Of a stretch of DNA of 64,000 bases, positions 15,120-43,059 are shown in pieces (the stretch's first letter is position 1; every line of letters begins with the position of its first letter). Source of the DNA: Azolla caroliniana. Lineage: Eukaryota > Plantae > Polypodiophyta. The stretch spans positions 21,018,001 through 21,082,000 of the forward strand of contig JBHGNT010000004.1 of assembly GCA_043228905.1 (NCBI GenBank). Direction: 5' to 3'. Both the position numbers and the translations under genes were made by a program. Under the pieces are notes generated by a model. The model did no database searches. It was not told the DNA's origin and saw nothing but the letters and a program-made list of their open reading frames with translations.

Positions 15120-15190
15120 GTAATAAGGATTCGAACCCATGACCTCTTCAAAGATAATGTGTAGCTTCAACCACTAGGATACATCATATT
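15120..15190 (-). other. tRNA-like A-box/B-box cassette in the LTR of X, antisense to the element
   Basis: Minus strand reads TATCCTAGTGGTT...GAGGTCATGGGTTCGAATCC with tRNA-like spacing. Confidence 0.75.
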
Positions 15191-15525
15191 ACATTTTCTA
15201 AATTATAAATTCTTATATTCTATCATGAAGAAACATATCTAATAGTGTGAAACGTTGCCACCATATAGGCTAACGCATGATTACCAAGTGTCATACTTGC
15301 ATGAATGCCAAGGGGCATGCTTGCATGAATGACAAATGGCGAGCATGCATGTATCCAAAGCATGCTATATAAACATATAGCGAACTATTGATGAACCATT
15401 CCGGTTCAATGCCAGTCTTCGGCATACTCTTGTAACCCTTGTTCTCATTGCTAATACATTTTCAATATCGTATTTCTCTCTCATTCCTCTCTTATTTTCT
15501 ATTTCTCATTCTTTTCTTCATGTTA

Positions 15526-16710
15526 AACTTGTCTTTGGCTACGGCCCTGACAGCCATTGACAAAACAAGTTATTAACCATTTGTCCCCTACTAGATCCAA
15601 TTTTTGGATTTGGGTTCTACCATGGTGAACATAGTCTTCTAGCGAGGAAAACTTCCTGCTAGATAGGTTCATTAAAGCTTGAGCTGCCTTGGTTGGAGAG
15701 GGAGGTTGCAGAAATTGGCCCTTGAAAACTGTGACAAAATCTGTCCAAGTATCGGGCAATTTCCCCAAAGTTCAGAGCCCACACCACCAAGCGACGGCCT
15801 TACCCCCTAGTTCTCGGCCGACATATGCAATCTTCATACTATCTGGCATGGGATAGAGCTCAAAATGAGACTCCCATCGGCCCAGCCACGTGCAGATTGC
15901 TTCTTTGGTTCTTTCCCTTTTTTCTCCCGTAAATGTCTTTACGACAAATGATGGTTCACCTTGACGCTCATCGGGTCTATTAGTGTCACGTTCTAAACTA
16001 ATGACACGTTGTCGCGATATATCCGCGAGTACATGTAGGATCCGAGGTGGGACCACGGGGGTCTTGGACTAGGGAGTAGAGGAGAAGGAATAAGACACAA
16101 AATGGAAGCTTAGCTCAAGAGGAGAAGAGAATGAATATGACATGAGGATTGAACAAGAGATCAATGGAGGCAAAATACTCAACAAGTTATATTAAGAAAC
16201 ACAAACGAATACAACCATGGTGGCATAAGCCAAAACCCAACGGCAACAAGAAACCCTAACCTCCTAAGTAAAGAAGATGATGATGAAACCCTAGAAGAAA
16301 AACTAAACCGAATAGAGACCCTCGACCTAAGTGGTATACCTCTCTCACTCAAAATAGGCAACCCCTTCACAAGAGACCCCTTCCTTCCTTTTAAAGCCCA
16401 AGGAGGGAGGTACATTACAATGTGGGATAAATACTCCCCCTTATTCTATTCACTGTTTTCCTACTATACATGTGCACATGTTGCACACCCCTGACTTGCC
16501 CATTCCACCCCGGTTTCACACTATAGCCGGAAATCTTCACGACAACGTGCCTCGAGAGCACTTTGAGATTGCCGATGTTCGGACACCTGATGAGCGGTTG
16601 AACTAAGGAAATTTTGTATTTGAAAGAAATATGACTCAATGGACATTGGTCCAGGAGGATTTCCTTGAGTTCCTTCCGATTGAGCTAATGAAATTGGGTC
16701 GTTATTCTAA
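15526..16710 (-). pseudogene. Retrotransposon gag relic of another family, interrupted by solo LTR 16010-16544
   Basis: KTFTGEK..ICTWLGRWESHF..KIAYVGRELGGKAVAWW and TW.DFV..FK.QF motifs. The frame is continuous across the solo LTR (ALEAR|VISLERD). Confidence 0.7.
16010..16544 (-). mobile_element. Solo LTR (tRNA-Trp lineage)
   Basis: TGTCG...CGACA termini, TSD ACGT on both sides, U5 motif GGGACCACGGGGGTCTTGGACTAGG. Confidence 0.9.
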
Positions 16711-17679
16711 GCCATTGAATGATTATTTTTGGCAAAGAAATAGGATAAGTTCAGACAAATAGTCATAACATCAAGTCGTGATGTAAACATATCATGGGCC
16801 AACATTAATCAATATCATGATCTCACGTCAATACCCCTCTAGAAGTATGAGATAAGGTTCAAGATCAAGTTACTATGGTAACACAAAGGTGTTTTAAAAA
16901 CCATGGGGGTGACAAATGAATGTCTTTCCCTAATCTCTATATTGTTTTTTTCATGGCGGCTCCCCGAGGCTCAACCATGTATGCTCGCGTCATGAATAGT
17001 TTATACATGACAAAAATGTTAACAATAAAGTATGTTTTTGTGCCCACATATGTGGCTTTGGCTCTGTAAGTCCTATTACAAGGACCCCGAAGTGCACTTA
17101 GACCTAAAGTCTAAACATGTCTTATAGTCATATGTATCAACAATGTTGTATGGTCTTGGTCATATTTGAACTCGAGACCTCGAGAACAAATGCATTAAAC
17201 ACTTGAGCTAACCAAATAGGTTGCCCGTTGTTGTGAAGATTCCAGGCCATAAGAGGAAACGTTATCGAATACGCGGGAACACGGGTGTACACGAGTACAC
17301 TACCCTTTTGAATTAACTTATGTGGGAGAGTAACGAGGAGAGCAAATCAAGGAGAGAATCTAGGGATGGATGGCGATGGGTCATTAAAGCTTATGTAACG
17401 GTTGCTCCTTGTGGAATAAAAGGGGCGGCCTTAGACTGTTTTAGGGGACGATGTGGAGGAGAAGAAGGGGTGGCCGAACCAGAGACAGGAGCTCTCACCT
17501 CTCTCTTTCGCTGGCTCTCGATTGAAGCTCAACGACCGAACCTCGGAAGGTGAACTCTCTACTCATGTCAGTAGCCCGCGTGCTCCCGACCAAAGGTTCA
17601 CCTTACTATTGTTTGCTCGAGAGCTCGAAGCTCGGTCACGGAACCATTCCGGTTGTTTCCCTACTCTTCACGCGCACGT

Positions 17680-20600
17680 TGTCGTGATGTGGCTCGCCTA
17701 GAAGCGTAGCGTTGCGCACACAAAGGATAACATGAAAGTGAGGAAGGAATCACTGGGATTATGGACGAAAGAGACGAAAGAGTAGAGATGGAGTGAATAG
17801 AGATCAATAAGATATGACAAAATAGGATTTTTAAGGAATATAAGATAAGAAAAGACAAGATATAAAATAATATATGAGAAAGTGTATGAAATTTATAATC
17901 ATTTTCATTAGAGAGTTACAAAATGATTGTGCACATCGTTGAACCTCCGAACTTTGTCTTGCAAGGTAATCGCTCTTCTCTTTCTTGATCGTAGACCACT
18001 ACAATCTTCACTCAATATTTTGATGAAGATAAGGCTCGAACCGCCTCCCTCTTGTTGAGAGTTGACCACCACGACCGCCAAGCTAGAGCTCCACGTTTAT
18101 GTTTTGTGTCCCATCCAATTCACTAAGCTTATAAGTAAAGTTATCATATACTTTTCTTACTATATAAGGCCCAAACCATCTTTCAGTGAACTTGCGGACG
18201 GTGCTATGTTGATTATCTAAACTGCTATCATACACGAGCACCCAATCTCCTTCTTCTATTTTCTTAGGTCGAATTCTATGAGTTTTATCAAAACGAATTT
18301 TATTCTTTAGTCGAGCCTCCTTCAATTGTTGGGCTACTATTTCTATATCTTCAGGTCAACGCTCTAATTGTTGAATTCGCAAAGCAAGTAATTCTTCTTT
18401 GCTCACCTCTTCTCTCCATGGAATAGATATCCATGACATAATTGATTCTTCTATTGGCATGATGGGATTTTGGCCAAGTATCAATTCAGTTGGCATGTAT
18501 CCTGTTACCGAACTATGAGCTGTTCGATCCACCCATAGTGCATAAGGTAGCATGTGTGGCCAATCTCTTATTTTACCTTTACAGCTTTTCACGATCGCCT
18601 TAACTATTAGGCTATGTCCTCTTTCAATCTTTCCATTGGCTTCTGGATTATACGCAATTGTAAGTGATAATTTGACCCCTATTCGGCTGAAGAATTCTCT
18701 AGCTTCATCAGAGTCGAGTTCTCCTCTATCTGCAATTATTTTACCAACACACCCGTAACGACATAGTACATCTTCTAACAAAAATTTACATACAGCTCTA
18801 GTTGTTTTTTGTCGTAGTGTTCTTCCTTCTACTTGGTTTGTAAGGTCTTCTCTTGCTAGTACAAAATATCGCATTTGACCTTCCCCAAGTGGCATTGTCA
18901 CTAGATCAACCATCCATTTATAATGCATTGATGATGAATATGTTGGTTTTAGCTAATCTCGATACCGGATAGTTGAATACCTCTGGCAAACCTCACAGGT
19001 TTCCACAAATTTCGTTACATCTTTATACATATGTGGCCACCAATACTTTTCTTTCAACTTCATAAATGTCGCCCATATGCCTCTATGTCCTGCCCACAAA
19101 CTATCATGGAATTCATTAATTAATTTTCTCTTAATGCCATCCTTACAAATGACTCGAAGAGGATTTTCGGTTGGCCTTTTTGGACGTCTCCATAAATGCC
19201 CTTCATGTAAAAAAAACTTGAATGCTCGTCTTCGAAATTCATTTAATTGTTTCTTCGACCATGATGGGTTGGCTTCTTGAGTCTTTAGAAAATTTCCTAT
19301 TTCTAACCATTGACCTTCATACTATGTGTCTTTGAACATTATACTTACATTAAACTCATCATGAGGCGTAATAGATTCTTGATGAGCAATTTGATGGCTT
19401 GTAGTTGCCTAGTTCTTATCTTCAATTTGCATCACCTTTTCATTTATGAACCTTGCCCTTGACAACATATCTGCAACTGGGTTGTCTTTTCCCTTTATAT
19501 GCCGCAATTCTAGGTTCATGGTTCTGATGTATGCAATCCACCGAAGCATTGCAATATCTGGTGTTGTGCAACTTGCTATCATTCCAATGAGTGGCAAACA
19601 ATTTGTTTCAACCACTACATCTGCTCCGATCAAGTAATCTCTATATGTTTTTAATGCAGTAAGCAAACCCCACAATTCTCGTTTAACTTGTGCATAGTTT
19701 CTTTGTCTTTCATTTAATATCTTTGCTCCAAATCTGATAGCATATCGATGTTGGTCTTCATCTTCTTGGTTGATAACCCAACCGATCCTGATTAGGCTAG
19801 TATCAACTGTTACTATAATTGGTATTTCACCTTTGTAGTCTGGTTGACGAAGAACTGGTGCTTTCAGTAATGCTTCTTTCAGCTGTTGAACAACTTGTGT
19901 ATGTTCCTCAGTCCAAATAAACTTCTTTCCTTTTCTTAAAAGTTGGTAGAGAGGATCTGAGACATGTGCAAAGTGTGGTAACCAAATATGATAAAACACA
20001 TGCACCCAAAAATCTTCTCACCTCTGTTACCGAGTCGCAAACTTCCTTCATATTTTGTATTGCGTTAATTTTGATCGGTGAAGGCTTCCTCCCATAGCAC
20101 CCACACATATGACCAACTATTAGAACTTCGTTTTTCCCAAAGCAAGACTTTGTTCCTGATAGTGTCAAATGTACTTGCTCAAGCTTATTTTAAATACTTT
20201 CACAGTCATTAATGTGATCCATCACAAACTTTCTGCAACCATCTCCAACCATAGTCTCATCTTTCTCTCTTTCTAAGCATCCCTTAATAGGAATATCATC
20301 TAAAAATGGCATAGTTACCTTTGGGATGTATTCATGTAGAACTTTGTTCATTGCATTCATCATATGAGCAACCGAATTCGTCGCACCTTGAGGTAGAGTG
20401 CACATTCGAACCAACCCAATTGGTGTTTTCATTGTTGTGATATTGCGACTATCAATTGCTAGTTGAAATTGGTCGTATCCTGAATATAGGTCTCCCATAG
20501 AGTAAATCGCTCTTCCAGCAAACGCTTCCGCAAATTCATCAACGATCGATCCGATTCCCGCATTTCGGATTGTGACTTTGTTAACTGGTTGTAGATCTTG

Positions 20601-23600
20601 AATGAATCTTAGAGAACCATCTTTCTTTGGGACTGTGAACCATCTATTGGAGTATGGTACATTTGAAGGCTCTAAAATCTTCATCTTGACTTTATCCTTC
20701 AGCAACTCCAACAATTGAGGTAATCGAGCTCTCGGTACTGCAATAGGTTTAAAATTCCAAGGAATATGAGGGATAGTAAATATTACCATTGGCGTCACCA
20801 CCTTTGGATTTACACAACCAATCTCCTCAGCTTTGAATGCGAACGCTTTCCCATGCCTAAAGATCATTTCTTTGAAAGTCGCGATCTCTAATTGCAGAAG
20901 AAATTCACCCCTTCCAATTCTCAAGTTATTTATTGTCTCCGATGTGAAGTGATGTCTGATCTTCTCTATTGGTCGAAGCATAGGCTCGGTTGCTGTTGCC
21001 TCCATCTTCTCTTCACTACCAATAGGTAATGGTATTGCAGCAGGTTTGACCTTTTTATCTATTGTTTTGTATTTTGTATTACATAAACTTTCTACTTCTT
21101 CATATTTACAATTATACCTATCAATCTCATAATACATATCAATTGAGTTTACATGTATCTTTCTGACATTCTCATCATCTTCTTTCAAATACATTTCTAA
21201 CTCTTCTAAAGTATTTGCAAAAGAAATTTCTTCCATAACACTTTCAATCTGCTCTTCCATTTCAAGTACTCCATTATCCTTCAATGCCTGCTGAAACAGA
21301 TTAGCATTCTTTTTCAAGTTCCTCTTGCATTCATACATCCTAGTCACACATATAGCACCACTTTCAAAAACATGAAATGACTTATTCATATGTTGTAATG
21401 CCCTATATGAGGGTCTTTTAATAATGGGACTATTGCAACCCTCACTCGCAACAATCCTAGTCAAAAACTTGATTATCAAAATCATCACAGTCTTTTGGTA
21501 TTGAATGATCACGAAGCTCTTGCTTGTTCCTCTCATGATTTGGGCGAACTGTCATAAATTGTACAGTTCATCGTCCATCTTGGCTACGGATTTTCGCATA
21601 AGCAGAACCATTGTCGAGGACTTTGGTCTCCATCCGTACCGTTGTAACGTATGGTTGCCCCAGGATTATTGGCTAGGTAGATCCTTCCTGCACAAAGAAA
21701 TGTTGTTCTACCTCTATATCACCAATAGTAACCTTTACATTTGGGCATGCACCAAATAAATCTTCCGTGACTGATGTGGCAGCTTTTACTCGCCAACCAT
21801 GTTGAGTATCAATTGGCCATCTACCTTTCCTGTAAAAATCAGCACTCATTATATTTATTTCAGAACCATGATCAATAAGTGCCATCACGGGGTCTGGAAC
21901 ATTTCCAATTTTCACATGATGCTCAGTAGTGGCTCTTGCCCAACATTTGCGAGAGTAATGGCTTCTTACATCTATTGAATTTATCATTGAGGTTGATGCA
22001 TGTTGAGAGTCAACAACGATATTGTTTGACTCGTTGCTCACCACTTCATATGCCACCTTCAGATTTGTCTCTTTAACCTGCTCATTTACTTGCTTCTTTC
22101 TTCGCACAATATCAATTATTTAATCATGAAATTCCTTTTTTGCAATACCTAACACTTCTCTTAGTGTAAATTCTACTCAACTGTCTAGTATTCTTGTTTC
22201 TAAAACTTTCTTTAAATCTGTATCCTTTTCAATATCAGACATTAATTTGAATGAAGGACCAGATTTACCTTTTTCGACCTTTGTGTCCATCTCTTTTCTT
22301 TTGCTGTCTCTTGTCTCATGTTTTTTTGTTGAGCCAATCTCATCATCCGGCCTTTTCCTTTTTTCTTCCACTATCACCTCATGCTCTTGGTGTTCTGCCA
22401 TCTGAGCATAGACCGTCATAGCATCTACTAGAACATCCCATCCAGTGTTTTTCCTTATAGAATCTCCAGCAACATGAAGGTCTTCCATCTTCATCTTTTG
22501 CTTTTGTGCAGTACTTACAACCTTCTCCCAGAATGATGATCGGGATGGCATGTCATCAAGGCGCATTCCTGTCGTTGCCGAGTAGTACATTGCGGAAGCC
22601 TTCTTTGCTTCAACTTCTTCAAATTTAACCTTGACACCACCATCACCAAAGTTCTTTGTAAGTGGACTTCTAGTTCAGTTAAATAAATGTTACCATTTTT
22701 CCAATACACCAAGTCTCGATTTTCCATGTCTTTATATTCCGCACAATCACGTAATCGATGTTCGAGACTATCACACCACATGCATCGAGGTCGAAATGAA
22801 TCCCTTGACCTCGAAGTTTGACCATTCTCAAGCTTTGCCACTTTAATTGTTAGATCTTTCATACTTTGAACTAAATCATCAAGCAAAGACTCACTCTTAG
22901 TTTCGATCATTTCTCGTGGTTGATGGACCATTTCATGTGACAGTTCTCGACCAAGTCTTTGAACTTCGATGTTTTGCTCAAGCCGATTTGTGATTCCCAC
23001 ATGCGGTATTTGTAGCATTGCACCATTCCTTTGCATTCTTTTCATAAATTTATTACAAGCATTTGTTACCTCATTCCAATCTGCAGTTATACCATCCTCG
23101 GTATTTGGTACTTCAAGCATAAATTCCAATTCTTTTCTATATCTCTTGTCAACTACCTGCAAAAATAAAGCAACCTTTTGCCAAGACAAAGAATTTCATT
23201 CTTCTGGCTTTAAGTGTCCATACATCCTATCAAACTCTTTTTTTGTGTCAGCCACAGATAACCCTTTATCTTCTTTTAAGATCCATTCATGAAATGAACG
23301 CATAGTAACTCGAGAGAAATCTTCACGAGAATATTCAGACACGAGTGCTTCTTTGAAGGCATTCCAATCCAAACTATGCAATGCTTGTATTTCACGAATT
23401 CTATCTCTTAATTCCATTTCTACTAATTTATAAAAGTTTGTTATCATATTGACATCATTCACACCAAACATTTCCATTTCATCATAATATATATTGACAT
23501 ACTTTGAGATATTTGTGCCATCAAACACACCAATCTTCTCTCGGACTTCTCATAAGGCATGAAATAATTGATCTTGGTTCAATTTTTCAATAAATAACCT

Positions 23601-24812
23601 TACCGAATCCATTGTACTTGTACTTGCCATATTGATGTTGATCTTTACTTTCGATGTCTCTTCTACTTCCCCGTTTCACGTCGGGTTCACCAAATTGTGT
23701 CGTGATGTGGCTTGCCTAGAAGCGTAGCGTTGCGCACACAAAGGATAACATGAAAGTGAGGAAGGAATCACTGGGATTATGGACGAAAGAGACGAAAGAG
23801 TAGAGATGGAGTGAATAGAGATCAATAAGATATGACAAAATAGGATTTTTAAGGAATATAAGATAAGACAAGACAAGATATAAAATAATATATGAGAAAG
23901 TGTATGAAATTTATAATCATTTTCATGAAATGATTGTGCACATCGTTGAACCTCCGAACTTTGTCTTGCAAGGTAATCGCTCTTCTCTTTCTTGATCATA
24001 GACCACTACAATCTTCACTTCAATATTTTGATGAAGATAAGGCTCGAACCGCCTCCCTCTTGTTGAGAGTTGACCACCACGACCGCCAAGCTAGAGCTCC
24101 ACATTTATGTTAAACTTCTTCCCTTCTTTCTCTATTTTTATGGTACCTCTTATGTAATACATAATTTGATTGATATCTCATACATATCTCTTATTGATCT
24201 TCTCTTTCACCCTTTAAATAGGTGCCCCCATGCATATGATGCATTGGAGGGTACAAGACATGCATGTGATGCATGATCGCCATTTGGCATTCATGCATTA
24301 CATGTGATGCATGATAAACATCTCGCTCATTTGAGCTTTTATGTATGAAACAATATATGCAATAAGAATAAACATGAAAATATAATCTTAAAGAGAAAGG
24401 ACCTAGCCTAATGATAGGTGTGTTAACTTTGGTGTATGAGGGTGTGGGTTCGAGTCTCAAAATACTATTGAATACAACATACAACTTTATTTTTATATCA
24501 TGAAGCAAATCCTTTATGTAATATAAAGTATATATAAAGTATGCTTTATTTTATGTATATTACTAGTATAGAGTAAATGGTAAGATTTGAGAGTCATGGG
24601 GTGGTGTTATTGGTTCAAGTCCTCTCTTGTTCGTGTAATATAATATATTTATCTATCTATATATATATATTATTTTTCTTTACATATATATCTAATATTA
24701 TCATATGTGTTGTTAATATTATCTTTATATATAAAACATTATCAAATGTTATTTTAGTTACGTATTTATCTTAGTGTAGACTTTTAATGTGAAGCTTTCG
24801 TACTTCACGACA
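17680..24812 (-). mobile_element. Element E: AT-rich gypsy of the tRNA-Trp lineage inserted in the 5' LTR of D
   Basis: 5' LTR 23698-24812; partial 3' LTR 17680-~18103; TSD ACGT/ACAT; gag 22177-23600 with CMWC..H..C knuckle; PR ALIDHGSEIN; RT 20190-21536; RH 19409-20005; INT 18083-19100. Confidence 0.92.
24397..24465 (+). other. tRNA-like A-box/B-box cassette in the 5' LTR of E, antisense to the element
   Basis: TAGCCTAATGATA at 24404 and GTGGGTTCGAGTCTCA at ~24444, followed by a T-rich run. Confidence 0.72.
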
Positions 24813-26564
24813 ACATTCTACCCACTAGCGTTAATCTACTACATCGTTTTACGTTGCTATTCGACTAGAGACTTTGTCACTGACTCTGATCCAGTTGTAA
24901 TCGCATATTGCGTTATGCGCCCATTCGCTTTAATATAACTTACCTTGTTAATCCGAATAGCTCGCGGTGTCTCTTTCTTGTCGCGTCGTGTCGGGCTGGA
25001 AACACACGATTCTCTCTCCGCTACTCTTCTCTATCTACCCACGGTCTTTGTGTTAACGCGAAGTGTAGACTCTTTCCCCTCACTTCCTGATTCCTTGGAT
25101 CAAGACCCCCGTGGTCCTACCCCGTTTCTACGCATCCGCACGGAATACCACGACATCTTTGGTGAACCCGACGTGAAACACGGGCAGAACAGGAATCTGA
25201 AAATCAGAGGGAGTGAACTCGCCGAAGCGATGGCGGTGGCTGTAGACCGCCTAGTTAGTGCTCGCGAGGGCATGAGTGCCCTCGACAGGGCCATAGAAGC
25301 AACGGTCGACAAGATAGGCCGGTTCAGTGGTAAAGACACCACGAGTTACCTGGAGGCCTACATATCCGAGATGCAGATGAGGAACATTCCGGAGGACAAA
25401 TGGCTGACCAGATTTCCACGGCGTGTGACGCCGAGCATCCATGCAAAAATGATCGAAATACAAGCAGGATGCTGCGATTGGGCAGACTTTGCGGAGCAGG
25501 TTCTCGAGCGGTACAACTTCGATGACTCAACCGGGTTGACAGCCCTGGCAAGGGTCAAAACCCTTCAGCGCTCCTCCAGGAGTTCGAGTCACGATTCGCG
25601 CGACTTTCAACGTTGGACCGGACTGTGCTTGACACGAGCAAGGTTCTGCTATTCTTTAAATCATTCGATTTGCTCAACCACAACAATGTGGGCCTACTAT
25701 AGACAAACAACGGTCTCACAGTCGACTGGTCGATGACAGGCGGGCAAGAAAGACCGGAGGAGCAGGCCCTTCGAGGAGGTATGACACCTAGAGCAGACCC
25801 AAGAGGCACGATGCCGCTCCAACTGGGTCCTAGGAAAAGGAAAAGGGCAAGGTTCCGAGCTTCCGACTAAGCTCGGAGATCGAGAAAACGACGAACTTGC
25901 GGAAGGTTCTGGAGGAGCGAGTTCTCGATAGTCGCGTAGAACTCATGCTGAGGTAAGTGCTAGGCATAGCAAGGAGAGAATTCCACGACAGCATCGTGGA
26001 TCTCGTGAAGAGAGCGTCTCACGATGGAACCGGAACCGGAAAAGCCGTTTGAAGTAAGGTCAACGCTCCTCGACGAGATGACCGCGGAAGACGAGCTTGC
26101 GGAAAGCCACTACGCCAGGCCACACTGGGCAAGAGCGACAACAGAAACCCCGGTTCATATCGGGGATGTGAAGGAGTCAATGGTAACGTTGATCGACCAC
26201 GGGTTGGAAATTAACCTAATGTCCATGGACTTCTACAAAAAGGGGAAATGACCAATCAACATTAAACATAGATGGAAGATACACGCGGCTACGAGGGCCA
26301 TAGAAGAGCTACACGGGGCTTGTCCAAATGTCAAAGTAAGTGTTGGGGACGTCGAGATAGACCCGCACTTTTTCGTGCAGGAGACGTCTTCCCATCTGGT
26401 CATTCTCAGCGAACCATACATCACGGCGGCTCGAATGGAGACCAAAGTACTAGACAATGGTTCAGCCTACGCTAGGGAAAAAGTCAGGACGTCCATCATT
26501 CCGTCCAGTTTTTGATAGTATGGCAGAATCACGAGCGAAACTGGGACACCCTCAGGAACACCGG

Positions 26565-29165: not shown

Positions 29166-29222
<57 letters not shown>
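29166..29222 (+). repeat. (CT)n microsatellite in R/U5 of the F LTR (shorter copy ~43017-43058)
   Basis: Directly visible. Confidence 0.95.
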
Positions 29223-29227
<5 letters not shown>

Positions 29228-29280
29228 TACCTTCTACTGTCATCTTATTTTTCTCTCTCCTATTCTCAAGTCACGACAGT

Positions 29281-29291
29281 TTGAACCGAAT
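29281..29291 (+). promoter_or_regulatory. Self-priming PBS of F
   Basis: TTGAACCGAAT is the exact complement of ATTCGGTTCAA (29076-29086), which lies ~33 nt after the TATA box. No TGG tRNA-type PBS. Confidence 0.82.
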
Positions 29292-31087: not shown

Positions 31088-31098
31088 TTGTTCACCTT
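31088..31098 (+). promoter_or_regulatory. Self-priming PBS of G
   Basis: TTGTTCACCTT is complementary to AAGGTGAACAA (30983-30993), ~32 nt after TATAAATA (30951). Confidence 0.82.
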
Positions 31099-32058
31099 CC
31101 CATCCTCATAGCTCTCCCTCTCATAAGCCATAGCTATGTCCGACTCAACTAGTGAGTTAGGCCAAATAATGGTAGCCTTACGACAACTACAACTTGAAAA
31201 TGAAGCTCTTCGAAATTCTTTACAAGAACTTCAAGTCGGTACCTCCCTATCCTCACAACCCCCGAACCCTAGTCTCCCACAACAACCTAGCCTAGAGCCC
31301 GATCTTCTACCAACATCTAGCCTAGCTTCGTCACAGTTTCTTGAGCCTAAGGTTAGCCTCCCAGAAAAATTTGATGGAACGAGGTCACGTTTCCGAGGGT
31401 TCATCAACCAAGTTCGACTTATAATTCGGCTACAACCTCAACGTTGTCGTGCCTTTCGGCTCCGGATCGTTGCGTGAGTCGGGTGGGAACCGCCGAGGTT
31501 TTGGACTAGGAGAAAGAAGAATATGAGATGAGGCTAGTAATGAATAGATTATTAGAAAGAGAGATAGAAATCTCGTGAATCCCACGAGTGTATTGTATTC
31601 GATTAATCAATATTTAGATAAGAATATGTATTTAGATTGAAAGAAAGATATAAGAAACTTGTGAATCCCACAAGTATAATTATATTATTTTCGTGAATCC
31701 CACGATTATATTAATTGGTTGGTGTTTTCGGAAATATATCCAATTTCCAAATATTTCACACACCTATTACATTGTGCTCCCCATCCTTATGTAGTGATGG
31801 GAGAGACTAAGCATAGCTACATGCTTTTTTTCTAATATGTTCATGCACACTAAATGTGCATGTGATGCTTTTCTAATCCTTGCTTTTATTTGCTAAATAT
31901 AGTGCTCATGCACGCTAGATGTGCATGAGTCACTTTTTAGTCGCTTGCGTTTTTCTATAAAATATTCACGCACTCTAAAAATACATGATTTACCTTTTAA
32001 TAAAGGTAGGCGCAAATAAAGCACTTATAGTTATTAAATCTATTTATAGAACACTAAA

Positions 32059-32130
32059 GATAAGGTAGCATAATGGTAAAGTTGAGGTTTGGCTACGTGG
32101 AGGTACAGGGTTCAAATCTTGCCCTATGCA
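32059..32130 (+). other. tRNA-like cassette in the LTR of H (second copy ~34467-34538), antisense to the element
   Basis: TAGCATAATGGTA at 32066 and CAGGGTTCAAATCTTG at ~32106. Confidence 0.72.
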
Positions 32131-32188
32131 CGTGATAAATATCTTGATATATTATTTTATTTATTTATATGTAATTAAATCGGTTATA

Positions 32189-33835
32189 TTATTTTTTTAC
32201 TTTTTCACGTAGTGTACGAAATACACTACGACACTCGCCCCCTCCGAACCCGCACATCCTCCGGTATGTGCCGAAGTTGCCGATGCTCGTTGTCTCCCCT
32301 TCATCCTCCGTTTGTCCCGCTATGTCAACTTTGTCTCTCCATTTTGAGTAGACGCATTCTTTCCACCCGAACCATTGTCGCCATCCGATCCACCATATTC
32401 TTTGTTCATTCTTTGCATTGCCATGAGTGGTTGTCATGGTCCCTTGTGGTACTCTTGAGCATCTCGGTGTGTTGTCTCTCTCCACTCCGCGCTTGTCTTC
32501 CGTAGGTTCTACCCACGCGTCGATGTCGACCTCCGAATACGCGCTCGCTGTTAGGTCCTTGTGCGGCTTTAATGCATGCTTTATTTCTCGATGTTGCACA
32601 TGCGTCGTATTAGGCCGTAGCGCATGCTTCGTATTCCATCGTAGTGCATGCGCCGTATTACCCCGTAGTGCATACTTATTTTTGCACCGTAGCGCGTGCT
32701 TCTTTTTGCGCCGTAGCGTGTGCTTCTCTTTACGCCGTAGCACGTGCTTCTTTTGGTGCCGTAGTGCGTGCTCCGTATTACATACTTCTCCCATCGTAGA
32801 CCCGACCTTCGCGTTGTCATGCTTTTGTTTACATCGGAATTTCAGACGGATCATCTTCCATCCGAACCGGCTTCCGACTTTACCTTCCTTGTTGCCACCT
32901 CCCGTCTCTCCGGTCTCACGTTGGTTCTCGGACACAACCGCCGAAGTCTCTAGAATTAGTGGGTAGGAATCCTCGGTATTATCATCTTCCATTGTTTCAC
33001 CCATAGCCATGTTCTCCTTGGCTATCTCTCCTTCGTATGCATCGGCTTCGACCTTCGTTTCGTTGCCGCCACTTTCCTTATCTTCGGTGTTATGTCGACA
33101 CCCGGGCTCTAGTACCGAAGTCTCCGAAACAATGGTGAAGGAATCCCTTCGTTCGTGCTCATTTACTTTGTCTTCCTCGTTGCCCTTCCAGTCCTCCACT
33201 TTTCCACCGACACATTCCGTCTCTCCGGTCTCACGTTGGTGCACGGGCACAGCCGCCGAAGTCTCTGGAACCGGTGTGGGGATACCCTTTCGTCCTCGAT
33301 CTTCCTCCTCCTCGTCCTTTGTTGGCCTCGACTTTGGTTCGGTTTTAAGCTCCCCTTCAATGTCGACTTGCGACTTTTCATGCATCTCCAAACCCTTCCG
33401 CATCAAGCTCTCCTTCGGTGGTAGTCGGTGGCCGCTTTTCACCCACTGTTGACCACCGTTCGTGGACCATGTCCTCGTCCGCTTCGGTCTTAGATAGTCA
33501 TATGTGTCTCGTATAGCTTCTTCAAAGGACTCCCACATCGGGCTTTGTTGTCGTATCTCGTGGATTCTCTCTTGAAGCTCATCCGTAGCCACCCGGTTGA
33601 AAGATAACACTTGCAATCTTTCTGAGATACCATATCGCAACATCTCCATTTTGTAGTCACGTAGATAGCGTGACACGTCCTTTCCATCGAATTGCCCGTT
33701 CTGTTGCACGAGCCGTTGTACTACTGTCGTGATCTCCGACATCTCGCGTTGTTCTTGTAGCATTCTCTCGAACATCATCATCATCATGTTCATCGCCTCT
33801 TGTTGATTCTCCATCTCCTTGCCACCCGCCTTCAC
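32189..33835 (-). CDS. Intact ORF: truncated Gag plus acidic repeats and 8-aa HALR repeats
   Basis: 548 codons without a stop. GQFDGKDVSRYLRDY..WESFEEAI Gag motif; ETSAV..QRETGE motifs shared with element A. Confidence 0.78.
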   Translation of the reverse strand: MKAGGKEMENQQEAMNMMMMMFERMLQEQREMSEITTVVQRLVQQNGQFDGKDVSRYLRDYKMEMLRYGISERLQVLSFNRVATDELQERIHEIRQQSPMWESFEEAIRDTYDYLRPKRTRTWSTNGGQQWVKSGHRLPPKESLMRKGLEMHEKSQVDIEGELKTEPKSRPTKDEEEEDRGRKGIPTPVPETSAAVPVHQRETGETECVGGKVEDWKGNEEDKVNEHERRDSFTIVSETSVLEPGCRHNTEDKESGGNETKVEADAYEGEIAKENMAMGETMEDDNTEDSYPLILETSAVVSENQRETGETGGGNKEGKVGSRFGWKMIRLKFRCKQKHDNAKVGSTMGEVCNTEHALRHQKKHVLRRKEKHTLRRKKKHALRCKNKYALRGNTAHALRWNTKHALRPNTTHVQHREIKHALKPHKDLTASAYSEVDIDAWVEPTEDKRGVERDNTPRCSRVPQGTMTTTHGNAKNEQRIWWIGWRQWFGWKECVYSKWRDKVDIAGQTEDEGETTSIGNFGTYRRMCGFGGGECRSVFRTLREKVKK

Positions 33836-36800
33836 GTCGGGTTCACCAACTGTGTCGTGCCTTTCGGCTCCGGATCGTTGCGTGAGTCGGGTGGGAACCG
33901 CCGAGGTTTTGGACTAGGAGAAAGAAGAATATGAGATGAGGCTAGTAATGAATAGATTATTAGAAAGAGAGATAGAAATCTCGTGAATCCCACGAGTGTA
34001 TTGTATTCGATTAATCAATATTTAGATAAGAATATGTATTTAGATTGAAAGAAAGATATAAGAAACTTGTGAATCCCACAAGTATAATTATATTATTTTC
34101 GTGAATCCCACGATTATATTAATTGGTTGGTGTTTTCGGAAATATATCCAATTTCCAAATATTTCACACACCTATTACATTGTGCTCCCCATCCTTATGT
34201 AGTGATGGGAGAGACTAAGCATAGCTACATGCTTTTTTTCTAATATGTTCATGCACACTAAATGTGCATGTGATGCTTTTCTAATCCTTGCTTTTATTTG
34301 CTAAATATAGTGCTCATGCACGCTAGATGTGCATGAGTCACTTTTTAGTCGCTTGCGTTTTTCTATAAAATATTCACGCACTCTAAAAATACATGATTTA
34401 CCTTTTAATAAAGGTAGGCGCAAATAAAGCACTTATAGTTATTAAATCTATTTATAGAACACTAAAGATAAGGTAGCATAATGGTAAAGTTGAGGTTTGG
34501 CTACGTGGAGGTACAGGGTTCAAATCTTGCCCTATGCACGTGATAAATATCTTGATATATTATTTTATTTATTTATATGTAATTAAATCGGTTATATTAT
34601 TTTTTTTACTTTTTCACGTAGTGTACGAAATACACTACGACAACGTTATGGAGATGGTCTTCGACAAGTCGGCCTTGTGGGTACCCTTCTCTCCGGTCCG
34701 GCCCAAGCTTGGTTTGCACCATTGGTAGAAACCTCGTCACCTCTATTGGAGGACTTTCCCACCTTCCTCGCCGAGTTAGAGGCCACATTTGGTGAGATGG
34801 ACCGACGACGTACAGCTCTTAACAAGATTTATGCACTCGAACAAGGTTCACGTGCAGCTTCGGTCTATGCTTCAGAATTTCGACAACTAGCATGCGACGT
34901 GAATTGGGATGATCAAGCTTTAGCTGATCACTTTCGGCGCGGCCTTCGAAGCAATGTCAAGAATCTTCTCTTAAACTTTCCGAATCCCACCTCATTATCC
35001 CAAGCGATTTCACAAGCAGTCCATTGTGACAATCGTCTTTTCGAATTTCGCCAAGAAGAGCGCCGGACTTGGGTTCCACCTCATTCACTTCCACGCCATG
35101 CCCTGGTCATACAACCCCAGGCATCCTCACACTCGCCTACTTTGGCAGATGCTCCTGTCCCCATGGAAATTGATCAAGCCCGATTTCGGCCATTGACTGA
35201 TGTTGAATGACAATTTCGGCGGGTTAATGGCTTGTGCATGTATTGTGGCGCCTCCGTTCATGTCGTTCGCCATTGTCCTAGGAGTACTCGCCCACAATTC
35301 CATCGAGCTAACGGACCCCAACATCCGGAAAACGACATAGTTCGATTGCAGTAGGAGCCATGCAACTGGACATCTCCCGTCGCCCACATTCTCTTGGTTC
35401 CATTGCCGGACCATCAGGCAATTTCACATTGGAGGTATGGCTTTCGTTTAACTCTAGTTCCATTCAGTCTGTTGCTTTACTTGATTCTGGGGCATCTTCT
35501 TGCTTCATCGACGTTGCGTTTGCCCAAGCACATGGCGTACCTGTCGTTGGCCTCTCAAAACCCATTCCAGTTGAAGCCATCGACGGGTGCATCCTCTCGT
35601 CAGGTGCAATTACTCAAGCTACAATCCCATTAGGGCTTCGGGTGGGCTCACACCAGGAGGAGCTCGCCTTTTACCTCATCGCATCTCCTCGACATCCGAT
35701 CTTCTTAGGACTAACGTGGTTGGAGACGCACAATCCAATAGTGGATTGGTGCAACCGCTCGATCACATTTAGCAAGCCAAGATGCTCGTGCAAAAGTATG
35801 AAGGTAAATTCAGTTTCCAATCCTTCGGAGACGGTCGACCTCGAATTGACTACCCCATCATCGGTCCAGGATGGGTTTGTTTGTGGCGCCATTTCTAACA
35901 CACTCCATGTTATTCCCGAAAAATACCAACACTTCTCCGACGTATTTGAAAAATGTAATGTTGATCGTTTGCCTGAACACCGGCTCTACGACTATCCGAT
36001 TGATCTTCAAGAAGGTGTGTGTCCACCATTTGGTCCTCTATATGCGTTGTCTGCACCAGAGTTGAAGGCCCTTCGTGTGTATCTCGATGAGAACCTCGAG
36101 AAAGGATTTATTCAACCTTCTAAGTCACCAGCCGGGGCCCCCATTTTATTTGTGAAGAAGAAGGATGGCTCTCTACGCTTATGTGTCGACTACCGAGGTC
36201 TCAACAAACTCACTGTGCGCAACCGCTATCTGCTACCTCTGATCCCCGAACTCCTTGATCGGCTCCGAGTTGCGCGTGTCTTCTCCAAAGTTGATCTGCG
36301 TGGAGCGTACAATCTAGTACGCATCAAGCCGGGGGATGAATGGAAAACCGCATTTCGAATACAAGGTAATGCCTTTTGGTCTTACTAACGCTCCCGCAGT
36401 TTTTCAACATATGATGAACGATATATTCCGGGAATATCTTGATCTTTTTGTTGTCATTTACCTTGATGATATTCTCATTTTCTCGCCAAACATGGAGGAG
36501 CACACTCGCCAAGTCCGATTAGTTCTTGCCAAACTTCGTGAGCATGGCCTTTATGCCAAAGGCCAGAAATGCGAGTTCGACCGTACCTCGATCGAATTTC
36601 TAGGCTACATCATCTCGCCCACTGGCATCACCATGGATATGAAGAAGATCTCTGTCATTCAGGTGTGGGCGACTCCAAGGCGACTTAAAGATGTGCAATC
36701 CTTCCTCGGCTTCGCAAATTTTTACCGTCGCTTCATCAAGGGGTTTTCCACCCTAGCACAACCTCTTATCACTCTCACCCATAAAGGCACTCCATTTTTA

Positions 36801-38865
36801 TGGACCTCGGAGGCGCAAAATGCATTCGACTCACTCAAACACGCATTCATCACTGCCCCGGTGCTGCTACATGCCGACGCCACAAAACCCTTCCAAGTCG
36901 AAACCGATGCCTCTGACTTTGCCATTGGTGCCATCTTATCCCAAGCAGACGACAACAACCTAATGCACCCAGTGGCTTACTATTCCCGAAAATTTACGGC
37001 ATCCGAAATCAATTATCCCATTTACAACAAGGAGCTTGCTGCTATCATTGTTGCCTTTGAAGAATGGCGACCCTACTTGGCTGGCGCACAACATCCTGTC
37101 CAGGTAGTGACTGATCACAAAAATTTAGTTTATTTTTCCACCACTCGTACTTTGAATCGAAGGCAAGCCCGTTGGTCGACATTTCTCGCTAACTACGATT
37201 TTGAGATCGTATTTCGACCTGGTGGCCAACATGGGAAGGTTGATGCCCTTTCTCGCTGAGCTGACCTTGCACTCCGCCCTGGGGATGCTAGTTCTGCTCA
37301 ACAATCTAGACGTTTGTTGAAACCCGACCAATTGCATCTTTTTGCCACTTGTATGTTGCAGGATGATTCTTTACTCCAACAAATCACTGATGCATCCAAG
37401 ACCGATGCGTTCGCCAACAAGATTCGAGATAGTCTGCAAAACCCCTCCAAGGCGACCAAAAGGAAGGATCTTGACACCTTCACCATACAAGAGGGTTTGT
37501 TGTTCCGAGATCATCTCTTATACGTCCCAGAGGGCCCATGTTGCACCCGGGTGTTGCGGGAATGCCACGACGACCCACTTGCAGGTCATTTCGGGGTCGC
37601 GAAAACCCTCGAGCTAATCTCTCGGGGGTATTGGTGGCCACAACCATGGAAGTTGGTCAAAGAATACATAAAGAGTTGTGAGGTTTGTGCTCGCTCCAAA
37701 GCCATTCATCATCGGCCATACGGCTTACTATAGCCGCTTCCATGTCCTCGTCGTCCTTGGGCCTCTATCTCTATGGACCTGATAACTGATCTACCCTTGG
37801 TCAATAGCTATGGCTCGGTGTTGGTCGTTGTCGATCGGTTTACGAAGATGGCTCACTTCACTCCATGCTCCAAAACCATTTCAGGAGAAGGAATGGTGCA
37901 TCTACTACTCAACAATGTGGTACGCTTGCATGGACTCCCCCCGATGATGTCATCTCGGATCGCGGACCCCAGTTTGTCTCTCATTTCTGGCAGCGCCTGC
38001 TACAAACTTTAGGCATCTCTGTCAAGTTGTCCTCCGCTTATCACCCCCAAACTGACAGGAAAACGGAGCGTGTCAACCAAATCCTTGAGCAGATCCTTGA
38101 GCAGTATCTTCGGTGCTCGGTTAGTTACCAACAAGATGATTGGGTCAACTTACTTTCGCTCGCGGAATTCGCCTACAATAATTCTCTCCATGCATCGATT
38201 GGCGTCACTCCCTTCTTTGCCAACTATGGTTTACATCCTCGCTTCAACATTTCCCTTCCTACCACTTCCGTGAACCCTTCGGCTGAGGATCGCGCCCGCA
38301 TTTTGGAAGAACTATATCATGATTTATCCTTGGAGCTTAGTCTTGCTAGTGAACGATACAAGAAGCAGGTTGATCGCCATCGATCTTCCACTCCACACTT
38401 TGTCGTTGGAGACATGGTCTGGTTGTTACGTCGACACATCTCTACTACTCGTCCATGTGCGAAACTTGATTACAAGAAATTGGGACCATTCCGTATCATC
38501 GAGTGCATCAATTCCGTCGCCTTCCGGCTCGCCCTTCCATTCCACTTCCGGATTCACGATGTTTTTCATGTCTCCCTCCTCGAACCCCATTATGCTTCAC
38601 AACTCCCAGGACGTCAAGCCCCACCACCACCACCTGTGCAATTGACGACAGGGGAGGAATACGAGGTCGACCAAATCCTTGACTCGCATTGGCACCGTTG
38701 ACACTTGCAATACCTCGTCCTATGGAGGGGTTACCCCATGTCTGAGGCCACGTGGGAACCATCGGCAAATTTACAAAATGCCCCAGAGGTCATCCAAGAT
38801 TTTCATCACCGATATCCCCACAAACCAACGGCCGATTTGGGAAGGCGGCGTAGGAGGGGGGATAA

Positions 38866-38935
38866 TGTCAAGATTCGAACTCTTGACACGACCATGTTAT
38901 AATCTAGTATTATGAGTTAACCAAGATATCTAGTA
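38866..38935 (-). other. B-box hairpin and weak A-box at the very start of the G LTR
   Basis: Minus strand TGTCAAGA-GTTCGAA-TCTTGACA forms a perfect 8-bp stem. TAGATATCTTGGTTA lies upstream. Confidence 0.55.
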
Positions 38936-41900
38936 CATAGTTATGTATGTAATTGGTCCTTATTATTTTGCTAGCATCATGTGCATAGTTACTCCCTTGT
39001 AATATTTACACTTGGCTCATGCATGCATACCTACATGCTCTATTGTAGATTCACATGCGTGCAACAAGTATTCATGCCATGTAGTATAAATAGAGGAGTT
39101 CACCTTGAAGGAATTCAAGGTGAACAACACCAATTTTGGAGTCTTTCCTTTAATACTATCTTCTTTCTTGTCCATTTGGTTATCTTCTTGCTTGTCTCTT
39201 GAGCTTATGATCCGTGACAGCTCCCAAGCCCAGTGTCAGTCGGAGTCATTGATGGATGCCCCATAGCATCAGGTGATATAGTTGAAGAGTCTGAACCAAT
39301 TCATGTAATCCTTGGCAATTTGGCTAGTGTCATCTCATTCAACATCATTAGTAGTCCAGAGCACTCCCTAGTTCTTGTTCTTCCATGGTTTGAGCTACAT
39401 ACCCCAACTATTGATTGGAGAAAAAGAACCATTGAAGAAGTCACAATACAATCTGAGCCTCTTAAAACTCCAACAAAGGATATGACATTCCAAAAGATTT
39501 CGACAATCTCTATACAGCAATTACGTGAGGAAGGATGGAAGGAAGACATGTTGGTGTTCGCAGTTTTAACAACACCCACATCGAGCTCACAAGAATCGGG
39601 GGTCCAACTACCGAAGAAATATATAAAATTCTCCGATGTTTTTGATAAGGTGAAGGCCGATAGACTACCAGAGCATCGACCATATGATTGCCCAATTGAT
39701 TTGCAACCCAGAAAAGAGCCTCCATGGGGGCCAATTTATAACCTTTCACCCACGGAGTTAGAGGTTCTTCGTGAATATATCGATGAGAACTTGGCGAATG
39801 GGTTTATCCAACATTCAAGATCTCCTGCCGGCGCACCGATATTTTTCATTAAGAAGAAAGATGGTTCGCTTCGTCTGGTCGTGGATTATCGAGGATTGAA
39901 TAAAGTAACTATTCGAAACCGATATGCTCTACCATTGACTTCAAGCCTTCTGGAACGCCTCAATGGAGCTAAGTATTTCACAAAGTTAGATCTTCGAGGT
40001 GCTTACAATCTTGTTCAAATTCGTCCTGGGGATGAATGGAAGACTGCTTTTCGTACTCGCTATGGCCATTTTGAGTATACAGTGATGCCATTTGGTCTCA
40101 CGAATGCACCAGCAGTTTTCCAACATATGGCGAATGACATTTTTCGAGATTTCCTCGATATTTTCGTCATAATTTACCTAGATGATATCTTGATCTACTC
40201 AAAAACTCAAGAGGATCATGATATACACGTTCGACAAGCTTTGCAACGGTTGCGTGAATATGGTCTCTATGCAAAATTGGAGAAGTGCAGCTTTGACCAG
40301 CGTTAAGTGGAATTTTTGGGGTACATAGTCTCTTCACATGGCATCTTTATGGATCCAGCAAAGGTTCAAACAGTTTTGGATTGACAAACACCACAGTTTG
40401 TGCGAGATGTACAATGTTTTTTAGGGTTCGCAAACTTTTATCGTAAGTTAATCAAAGATTATTCAAAGTTCGTATTGCCCCTCACTCAACTGACACAGAA
40501 GAATCAACCATTTGTGTGGAGTATAAATGCAAACTCTGCATTTGAAGGATTAAAGCAAGCATTTACATCCTCACCAATTTTGATGCATGTTGATCCATTG
40601 AAGCGCTTTATACTGGAAGCTGATGCATCTAACTTCGCACTAGGAAGCGTATTATCCCAGATTAGCAATGATGGCCAACTGCACCCTGTGGCTTTTCATT
40701 CACGGAAATTTGAAGCTGCACAAATCAACTATGAGATTCACGACAAAGAGCTTCTTGCCATTGTGGATTCTTTTCAACAATGGTGTCATTTTTTGGAGGG
40801 TTCTTCTCAACAAATCATTGTCTATAATGATCACAAAAATCTAACATACTTCCAAAGTGCTCGAGTCTTGAGTCGTCGACAAGCTCGTTGGGCGCAGTTT
40901 TTAACTCGTTTTGATTTCGTAATTCTATATCGCCCTAGGACGCAACAAGGCAAAGCAGATGCTTTATCTCGGCGTTCATATATGGAACTTCAACCAGGAG
41001 AGGCCGCATTTGAAAGTCAGAAGCAAATCCTCTTGGGTCCTGACCGTCTACGACTAATGGCTTTTCATGCTATAGACACACCCGAGGATTCAAGTCTTCT
41101 AGACTCCATTCGGGAGCATATTGAGACTGATGAATTCGCCCAAGATATTCTGAACCATATTATCCCAGATCGTGCTTCTTGTTCACAATCTCAAAATCCT
41201 CGTCAAGACTACAACCAGTTCAATTGGCATGATGGTTTACTTTTTCGACAAAATCTCTTATATGTGCTTGATGGTCCTTCTCAACTCCAAGTCTTGCAAC
41301 AATGTCATGATACACCAATGGCTGGACATTTTGGCATCCACGAGACTTTGGCGTTAATTTCTCGAAGGTATTGGTGGCCACGACTTCGCCATTTTGTTAC
41401 GGATTATGTTCATAGTTGGGATACATGTTGCCGATCCAAAAAACCTCGACATCATCCATATGGCTTATTACATCCAATGCCTATTCCTGAGAGTCCATGG
41501 AAATCTATTTCGTTGGACTTCATTACGGATCTACCACCTTCCAAGGGTTTTGATTCTATTCTCACGGTAGTAGATCGTTTTACCAAGATGGCACATTTTC
41601 TTCCTTGCACAAAGGCCATTACGAGCCAAGAGACGGTCGAGTTACTCATGCAAGAGGTGTTTCGGCATCATGGTCTTCCTGATGATATTATTAGTGATCG
41701 AGGTCCCCAATTCATCTCAAAATTTTGGCGGCACATGTTCAAACTCTTACATACTTCTTGCAAACTCTCTTCCGGCTACCATCCAGAAACTAATGGACAG
41801 AGTGAGTGCACCAACCAAACAGTAGAACAATATCTTCGTTGTTTTGTCAACTATCAACAAGATGATTGGGTTGATCTATTACATTTGGCGGAATTTGCTT

Positions 41901-43013
41901 ACAACAACTCAGAACATTCTTCTACTGGATATTCCCCATTTTTTGCAAACATTGGGTACCATCCTCGTTGGACTATGCTTGAACATCCCGAACTCCCGAC
42001 AAACCCGGCTGCTGAAGATCGGCTCACCCGACTCCAAGAAGTTCAAGATATCCTTTTGCACCATTTATGTGATGCTCAAAACACTCAAAAGAAGGTTGTC
42101 GACCGTCATCAATGTGATTCATCGACTACGTTTCAAGTGGGGGATCGAGTATGGCTCTTACAAGGTTGCATTAAAACAACCCGACCTTGCTGCAAATTGG
42201 ATTATCAACGTTTTGGCCCATATGTGATATCTGGTAAGATCAATGATGTGGCATTTCGCCTTGATCTTCCCCCTCATATGCATCTTCACCCGGTCTTCCA
42301 TGTTTCACTTTTGGAGCAGTACACAACCAGCTCTATTCCAGGCCGTCTTACATCTCCCCCACCTCCAATCGAAGTTTCGAATGGCTCTGAATATGAAGTT
42401 GCTGCCATTCTCGACTCCAAGATCGTTCGCAACAAACTGTATTATTTGGTTGACTGGTTAGGTTATACACCTAATGATCGAACATGGGAACCTCTTGAGA
42501 ATCTTGTTAATGCCTCCGAAATGGTTGTTGCATTTCACAACAAATATCCTCATAAGACAAGTCTGAAATCTTGTCTTCCGACTCGTGGAACTCGTTGTCG
42601 AAAAGAGGGGATAATGTCATGACGACATACATTTTGGCCTTACAAGGATTCGAGCCCAAGACGTATTGGTCTATATGTTAGACCTTTAACAATTATACTA
42701 ACATATATGATGTATAGTTATAATAAATGTATTATTAGTTATTACAAGACATTTAGAGTATTCTAGAACATTCTAGAGTATACCAGAACAATCTAGAGTA
42801 TTCTAGAACATTCTAGGATATTCCATGATTATATTAAATATCATAAATATTCTAGAACATTCTAGAATATCAATAAGGACCTATAAATAGGTGTCTGTTC
42901 ATTCATCACAAATCATTCAGTTCAACACCAGTTTGTAGCCCCTTAGCCTACTCTTTGTAATCCTTGCTCACTTATAATATAAACTCTATAAACTCTCTTT
43001 CCATTTCTAGTGT

Positions 43014-43059
<46 letters not shown>

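Follow-up and report, generated by a model that had tools for sequence, protein, structure and literature searches.

Why would Ty3/gypsy retrotransposons keep, in the upstream (U3) part of their long terminal repeats (LTRs), the A box and B box of a tRNA gene reading out of the element? The question is raised by a 64,000-nucleotide stretch of the fern Azolla caroliniana (GenBank assembly GCA_043228905.1, contig JBHGNT010000004.1, positions 21,018,001 to 21,082,000), here called the window and numbered from its first nucleotide. By self-BLAST and by open reading frame (ORF) and Pfam calls it is a nest of LTR retrotransposons with 44% GC. A first-pass annotation of the sequence had described antisense box pairs in the LTRs of five elements (X, F, G, E and H), which it took to be unrelated families. 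We found motifs at every site it had listed, beyond chance expectation, while the five families, the A box of G and the constant orientation did not hold up. The modules belong to two lineages, and in one of these, the self-priming chromoviruses, the boxes are conserved well above the sequence around them. We tentatively read the modules as tRNA-derived promoter cassettes of RNA polymerase III (Pol III) that may be kept as DNA sites bound by TFIIIC.

Box modules in the long terminal repeats

Modules were scored with a test set beforehand, against the A box TRGCNNAGTGG and the B box GGTTCGANNCC with an A-start to B-start spacing of 38 to 50 and a maximum score of 18. Seven copies in the window score at least 15/18, which makes five sites when duplicate LTRs are collapsed (X with a score of 17, the 5' LTR of F, H in two copies, one antisense site in E, and a sense pair in two copies in E). 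All of them fall in LTRs. Dinucleotide shuffles of the whole window (n = 300) gave 0.61 matches at this level on average and never more than 4, and no shuffled match scored 17; shuffling in 300-nt blocks, with local composition kept, gave a mean of 0.60, and 0 of 300 shuffles reached 5. The comparison with shuffled DNA that had been proposed as a check of the earlier claim is favourable to it (five collapsed sites against about 0.6 expected). That the boxes are motif matches in AT-rich LTR DNA without common descent has a probability close to negligible as a general explanation: apart from the excess at 15/18 and above, the modules hold their position in relatives and match one profile across lineages (see below). 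Weak matches are common, with 17 in the window against 7 expected at 14/18 or better and 41 ARAGORN 'tRNAs' at an 80% threshold. Chance is excluded for X, F and H. It could still account for G and for two features of E, its sense pair and its second antisense copy. The E sense pair is dissimilar to the other modules, does not match the chromovirus module profile and may be the single match predicted by chance.

Each module is antisense to its element, lies 20 to 355 nt inside the 5' end of the LTR and is found upstream of the TATA box (Table 1). It consists of an A box, an AGGTC remnant of the variable loop and a B box, placed according to tRNA numbering. The A-start to B-start spacing is 43 to 44 nt in every module of the window and of its relatives, as in tRNA genes, and an AT-rich TATA-like stretch lies 20 to 35 nt upstream of each A box. 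Box consensus and tRNA-like spacing as in type-2 internal Pol III promoters are found in X, F, H and E, and the relatives score 14 to 16/18. The module of X is retained at 16/18 in its close relative L086; the A box in the 3' LTR of F has lost a G to T after insertion.

The T8-to-G53 distance of 44 to 45 nt that the first-pass annotation gave for X, F, E and H agrees with the spacing found here, and the anticodon-like arm it saw in F is present with a 5-bp stem and a 7-nt loop (GGTCT AACATAT AGACC). The T-arm-like hairpin claimed for G also exists, although its 8-bp stem around GTTCGAA sits one base out of the T-loop register. The weak A/B-box pair of G could not be confirmed: no credible A box is present, the score stays under 14/18, the module profile gives no match and the box consensus of a type-2 promoter is lacking. 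Its second hairpin copy, in the 5' LTR (30734-30760), has decayed. A constant orientation and U3 location was borne out for the listed modules, all antisense and upstream of the TATA box, and is broken by the sense pair in both LTRs of E.

The modules are box cassettes, not tRNA genes. ARAGORN at default settings found 0 tRNAs in the window, and Rfam gave no tRNA match in the window even at E up to 10. The low-cutoff tRNA scan suggested earlier does pick up modules (H, and E copy 2) at ARAGORN thresholds of 75 to 85%, where they are swamped by 11 to 108 background calls. Cloverleaf pairing holds in 49% of cells, the same as in shuffled and slid controls, and no compensatory covariation was seen; in the T stem the inner 3 bp alone hold. 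The features of a functional tRNA gene are thus lacking. A T-run of at least four is present downstream of the B box in X, L086, L003, L001, L084 and the 3' LTR of F. This terminator pattern is uneven among the modules, so that conservation of a defined Pol III transcript is not clear.

Table 1. Box modules, priming sites and elements of the window (scores out of 18, with A box + B box in brackets; spacing from A start to B start in nt; PBS, primer binding site; RT, reverse transcriptase)
Feature	Positions	Strand	Details
Module X	15113-15189	-	3' LTR of chromovirus X; A box TATCCTAGTGG, B box GGTTCGAATCC; 17/18 (8/9 + 9/9), spacing 44
Module F, 5' LTR	28852-28927	-	15/18 (7/9 + 8/9), spacing 44; chromovirus profile 62.8 bits
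Module F, 3' LTR	42633-42708	-	14/18, spacing 44; profile 61 bits
Module H, 3' LTR (lower coordinates)	32060-32121	+ (antisense to H)	15/18 (8/9 + 7/9), spacing 43; ARAGORN match at 85% threshold
Module H, 5' LTR	34468-34529	+	15/18, spacing 43; 115-175 nt from LTR 5' end; scores equal to other H copy
Module E, antisense copy 1	24404-24457	+	U3 of 5' LTR; 15/18 (7/9 + 8/9), spacing 43; profile 12.8 bits, E = 0.04
Module E, antisense copy 2	24564-24622	+	14/18; ARAGORN match at 75% threshold; weak on its own; absent from the first-pass list
E sense box pair	24040-24093 and 18032-18085	-	both LTRs, downstream of TATA box; 15/18; tRNA-Leu-like by ARAGORN at 85% threshold
G LTR start	38866-38892	-	terminal inverted repeat TGTCAAGA/TCTTGACA around GTTCGAA; B-box-like hairpin only
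Self-primer site of F	29076-29087	+	ATTCGGTTCAA, about 30 nt after TATA box; exact 11-nt complement to leader TTGAACCGAAT, 1-2 nt past 5' LTR (about 29281-29291)
Self-primer of G	30983-30993 with 31088-31098		about 30 nt after TATA box; 11-12 nt exact complement to leader just past 5' LTR, Tf1-like
PBS common to H, E and A	33826-33843 (H), about 23675-23692 (E), about 342-359 (A)	- (H)	TGGTGAACCCGACGTGAA (TGGTGAACCCGACGTGA)
Element F	28834-43110	+	LTRs 445-495 bp; target duplication CATCC; pol with RT, RNase H, integrase, SH3_Tf2-1 and chromodomain
Element G	30734-39219	+	nested in F; target duplication GCTC[T/C]
Element H	31445-34642	-	nested in G; gag-only, 3.2 kb; 796-bp LTRs 99.6% identical; single 548-aa ORF; target duplication ACGT
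Element X	pol 11450-15087	+	3' LTR from 15088; 5' LTR missing
Element E	17681-24812	-	nested in another LTR; 5' LTR about 1.1 kb; encodes RT and integrase

Carrier lineages and conservation of the boxes

The carriers amount to two lineages, a self-priming chromovirus clade (F and X) and a Phygy-like clade (E and H), and the claim of five unrelated families is not supported. X and F are 72 to 77% identical in pol at the nucleotide level, their LTR starts and modules align, and they share the LTR terminus TGTCATGA and the position of the module. Both have full pol regions with the Pfam domains Chromo, SH3_Tf2-1, rve and RT_RNaseH and belong to the Tcn1/Tf1 type of self-priming chromoviruses, self-priming being deduced for X from its relative L086. 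F has no need of a tRNA primer, because an exact 11-nt self-complement is present and the relative L003 carries a compensated one-base insertion in its own self-primer (4300-4320 with 4457-4470; ATTCCGGTTCAA paired with TTGAACCGGAAT). Self-priming plant chromoviruses have been assigned to the Tcn1 clade, which is found in mosses and club-mosses (Neumann 2019).

One PBS is common to E, H and element A; the LTR termini of E and H are also similar, and both have ACGT as target duplication. We take TGGTGAACCCGACGTGA to be the 3' end of plant tRNA-Trp; a literature search with the PBS string returned unrelated primers only. The moss clade Phygy has a tRNA-Trp primer and a 4-bp NCGN target duplication (Neumann 2019, supplement). 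By the PBS and the 4-bp target duplication, E, H and A are likely Phygy-like non-chromoviruses. The two element lineages by themselves would point to a bryophyte genome, probably a moss; the sequence is also present in leaf and plant metagenomes.

Relatives were collected as whole elements on metagenome contigs by protein searches, most of them from the ENA series ERZ1034xxx and ERZ27227xxx. Chromovirus relatives at 92, 84, 78, 72, 68 and 66% pol identity all retain the antisense module, while the rest of their U3 is unalignable. The end of the B box lies 21 to 39 nt inside the LTR start in eight LTRs of the clade (X, L086, F, L001, L084, L085, L087 and L003). The earlier statement that the LTR surroundings do not align is wrong for the LTR starts and modules of X and F. 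Among Phygy-like elements, L094 (66% gag identity) carries an antisense 16/18 module in U3, just after gag, and L097 (34% gag identity) has an antisense module in U3 of both LTRs. The G-like relative L018 is missing the motif and L004 has a partial match only. In the P0022 family (57% identity), which has an extra ORF after pol, no module was found in the flank examined. Seventy-eight distant metagenome chromovirus loci (36 to 46% identity, 470 kb) gave six matches of at least 15, a background level. Among the loci scanned, the module is confined to near relatives.

The conservation of the boxes was measured on eight module sequences of the chromovirus clade. Mean pairwise identity is 0.76 at the 23 box positions versus 0.48 at the 50 other module positions (Mann-Whitney p = 7.5e-5), and the proposed comparison of boxes with neighbouring sequence thus came out in favour of the boxes in this clade. 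The invariant sites G53, T55, C56, A58, C61, T8, A14 and G18 are universal tRNA positions, and variation is seen at 57 (G/A), 59, 60 and 62, as in real tRNA genes. The AGGTC remnant is also retained across the chromovirus modules. An alignment of seven whole LTRs from the same clade has a peak at the LTR terminus and further ones over the B box (region score 0.73), the A box (region score 0.61 to 0.66) and the self-primer (0.77), with other U3 at 0.04 to 0.54; of these, only the self-primer scores above the B-box region. Since the boxes are kept while cloverleaf pairing equals that of controls, the constraint appears to act on the DNA sequence of the boxes and not on an RNA fold. These data support the view that the modules are under selection, at least in the chromovirus clade.

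A sequence-only profile was built from the eight chromovirus modules and searched over 461 kb. It matched L094 (33 bits, E = 2e-8), H (26.3 bits, E = 3e-6), L097 (16 bits, E = 0.005) and antisense copy 1 of E (12.8 bits, E = 0.04), each across both boxes; 55 distant loci gave 8.8 bits or less (E at least 0.77), with one partial match only. Twelve E. coli tRNA genes reached 12.8 bits at most, in the T-arm half only. Because a profile made from chromoviruses alone matches the Phygy-like modules over both boxes, a common tRNA-derived source or a transfer between lineages is preferred over convergence. It had been suggested that the LTRs either captured or converged on a tDNA-like module; capture from a shared source is the better supported half (E = 2e-8 to 3e-6 for the two best matches), and convergence fits less well. 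Both lineages probably drew on one common source, the profile comparison being suggestive and its controls bacterial. Derivation of the modules from tRNA is supported.

Possible role and competing explanations

We favour, at somewhat less than an even chance, a tRNA-derived type-2 Pol III promoter/TFIIIC cassette retained as a DNA site at the outer edge of U3. The degenerate tRNA-derived cassette, similar to the head of a short interspersed element (SINE) and reading outward (antisense) from U3, is inherited vertically within the two Ty3/gypsy lineages and was probably taken from one source. The boxes may act as a DNA site, an internal type-2 promoter to which TFIIIC would bind, alone or together with Pol III. 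Factors present at this outer edge of U3 could then provide a boundary or a patch of open chromatin for the Pol II promoter of the LTR, with short outward Pol III transcripts as a possible by-product. A stronger version would have two unrelated Ty3/gypsy lineages carrying a selected outward TFIIIC/Pol III cassette as a portable boundary that shields the Pol II promoter in nested heterochromatic clusters of transposable elements, that is, an insulator of their own, obtained from a tRNA-derived source and exchanged between the lineages; we regard this version as unlikely.

Several results weigh against the favoured reading. With effectively two independent lineages, the shared antisense orientation is weak evidence, and E also carries a box pair in sense. 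The module is missing from the window LTR families A, 17229/45117 and the 56947/60387 pair, from G apart from its hairpin, and from the relative L095. A T-run terminator is missing within about 60 to 80 nt of the B box in L085 and L087, and the 5' LTR copy of F has TTTT between the boxes. Position 54 is C in F and position 10 is T in three families. The tRNA genes that served as controls for the module profile were bacterial and GC-rich, and did not come from the host.

The module might instead be a tolerated relic that has no function of its own, left by one or two captures of a tRNA or tRNA-derived SINE into U3; a SINE could have inserted into an active copy, or a template switch onto a packaged tRNA could have occurred during plus-strand synthesis. 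The antisense bias would then arise because a tRNA-like structure in sense would expose the genomic RNA to cutting by RNase P/Z or bring in poly-T/poly-A signals. The decayed cloverleaf and the terminators that are not conserved fit such a relic, as does the lack of a module in several related families (L018, L095 and A), and SINE insertion into LTRs has been proposed as the origin of Helenus elements (Kojima 2024, PMC10886601). L087 carries an extra 16/18 antisense pair in its protease-RT linker, so tRNA-like pieces enter these elements elsewhere too, again in antisense. A relic should decay evenly, however, yet conservation is much higher in the boxes than at the 50 other positions, and it is the universal tRNA/box sites that are invariant. 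The module is also among the best-conserved parts of LTRs whose other U3 is unalignable, and no SINE tail or target duplication surrounds it. We judge the relic unlikely on balance, though a serious candidate. It is a good deal less probable that the RNA product is what is selected, as an outward Pol III RNA of about 90 to 120 nt, which in the 3' LTR would run over the junction of U3 and the polypurine tract (PPT) and serve as a regulatory or decoy RNA or a SINE-like passenger, comparable to the Pol III units of some retroviruses and herpesviruses. The boxes, their spacing and the upstream AT-rich TATA-like stretch do fit plant tRNA gene promoters; the PPT complement supplies TTTT just past the LTR edge in F, L001 and L084, and TTTT lies within the LTR in X, L086 and L003. 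In bovine leukemia virus, internal type 2 promoters are reported to drive Pol III transcription of the miRNA cluster (PMC12498455). But TATA-like motifs and T-runs are cheap here, because U3 is AT-rich throughout; outside the boxes the transcribed sequence shows little conservation and no conserved fold, and a defined RNA product is doubtful since terminators are not conserved in L085 and L087, which have none.

A further candidate, a second primer site of the Ty3/Gypsy type, was rejected as very improbable. At such a site the primer tRNA would dock at the 3' end of the genomic RNA through U3 sequence complementary to its T and D arms. The polarity fits, as the genomic RNA has the complement of the T and D arms, and sites of this type are documented for the bipartite PBS of Ty3 (PMC5371799) and the 3' PBS of Gypsy (PMC1635307), in which U3 or 3'-end sequence is likewise complementary to internal tRNA arms. 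Those are short matches to the element's own primer tRNA, whereas the carriers here include self-priming elements: F, G and relatives prime themselves through 11 to 12 nt at the start of R that are complementary to the leader, which makes a Ty3-style site unfit for F and G, and a nearly identical module occurs in lineages with different primers. In E and H, whose PBS is probably of the tRNA-Trp type, the modules appear to share about 7 contiguous nt (AATGGTA) with the D arm of tRNA-Trp and nothing specific in the T arm, and they probably do not match the primer tRNA.

How does the favoured cassette compare with known systems? Yeast tDNA barriers and the TFIIIC sites of mouse B2 and human MIR/Alu set chromatin boundaries rather than encode RNA. 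These insulators, like extra TFIIIC (ETC) sites, retain a B box, in some cases together with an A box, as boundary DNA to which TFIIIC binds (for example PMC8136502 and PMC7014570), and this matches a constraint limited to the boxes. Such sites belong to the host genome or are SINE copies that were co-opted once inserted, unlike the present modules, which are built into an LTR retrotransposon. The head of a tRNA-derived SINE (SINE2) is also alike in its degenerate tRNA, conserved boxes, AGGTC remnant and decayed anticodon arm; our modules differ in lacking a body derived from a long interspersed element, an A- or T-rich tail and a flanking target duplication (neither tail nor target duplication was found in the module alignments), and in having a fixed position relative to the LTR end across families.

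Among LTR elements, 'not a few LTRs' in Repbase are reported to contain tRNA-like parts, the elements analysed being all under 1 kb (Kojima 2024, PMC10886601). The closest case is that of the Helenus elements, miniature retrotransposons with terminal repeats (TRIMs; 'TRIMp3'), which likewise have tRNA-derived A and B boxes inside the LTR, encode a non-functional tRNA and have been attributed to SINE or tRNA capture (PMC10886601). The LTRs of Helenus-1_SMo and of three wasp families carry the tRNA-like part in sense, so that Pol III would make the template RNA of the element; Helenus elements are non-coding and 311 to 1263 bp long. In the carriers studied here, a TATA box with a self-primer or PBS defines a Pol II-type transcript, all conserved modules are antisense and upstream of the TATA box, and the elements are autonomous, pol-encoding chromoviruses and a 3.2-kb gag-only element. 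The sole plant Helenus reported, from Selaginella, is GC-rich and differs in sequence from our AT-rich modules when compared by eye. Cassandra TRIMs resemble the modules in having a fragment of a Pol III gene with its internal promoter in both LTRs, conserved across species; theirs is 5S rDNA with a type-1 promoter, in sense, in small non-autonomous elements that are reported to be transcribed from their own Pol III promoter (PMC10886601).

What was already known is thus the presence of forward-facing tRNA-like sequences in the LTRs of small non-coding TRIMs, with a presumed role in Pol III synthesis of the element RNA. What is new is that protein-coding gypsy elements carry such a cassette facing backward, upstream of an ordinary Pol II promoter and with constraint on the boxes only. 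The arrangement had been put forward as undescribed; our literature search found no report of antisense tRNA-like cassettes in U3 of protein-coding gypsy elements, and the claim of novelty holds for that form, with Helenus preceding it for the sense form. If TFIIIC binds the cassette, these would be retrotransposons with their own tDNA-type boundary or open-chromatin element. That would bear on how elements stay expressible within silenced nested clusters and on the origin of host tDNA-like insulators. In plant genomes rich in transposable elements, low-stringency predictions of tRNAs and SINEs are inflated by such cassettes, which can also serve as a sequence marker for tracing exchange between LTR families.

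Nested elements and other observations

The target duplication of E is ACGT/ACAT (17677-17680 and 24813-24816), with one copy mutated to ACAT, and that of H is ACGT/ACGT (31441-31444 and 34643-34646). E has an internal deletion (18103-18140) that fuses the integrase frame to the middle of the 3' LTR and has removed the C-terminus of integrase, the PPT and about 700 bp of U3. The U3 of E is visible once only because of this deletion. Contigs of three public runs join 31438 to 34641, which means that some copies of G have an empty site where H sits here. Summed contig depth is far higher over the H LTR than anywhere else in the stretch, indicating that H is highly repeated.

A degenerate tRNA-like stretch on the minus strand at 17164-17225 (TAGCTCAAGTG ... 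GAGTTCAAATA; profile E = 0.04) lies outside any LTR, directly next to the outer end of the one beginning at 17229. In the LTR of L097 (3810-3910 and 1005-1105), two convergent A boxes (TAGCCTAGTGG on one strand and TGTCCTAGTGG on the other) surround one near-palindromic B box in an 8-bp inverted repeat. The extra antisense pair of L087 mentioned above (1072-1124, minus strand; TGGTGCAGTGG ... GGTTCGATCCT) is located in an open pol frame, in a hypervariable part of the linker where other members have unrelated sequence. The U3 of F (28975-29036 and 42756-42870) contains tandem palindromic repeats of TTCTAGAACATTCTAGAA, which fit the alternating GAA/TTC of heat-shock elements and are scored as weak miRNA-like hairpins by Rfam; longer arrays of them are found in L001, L084, L085 and L087.

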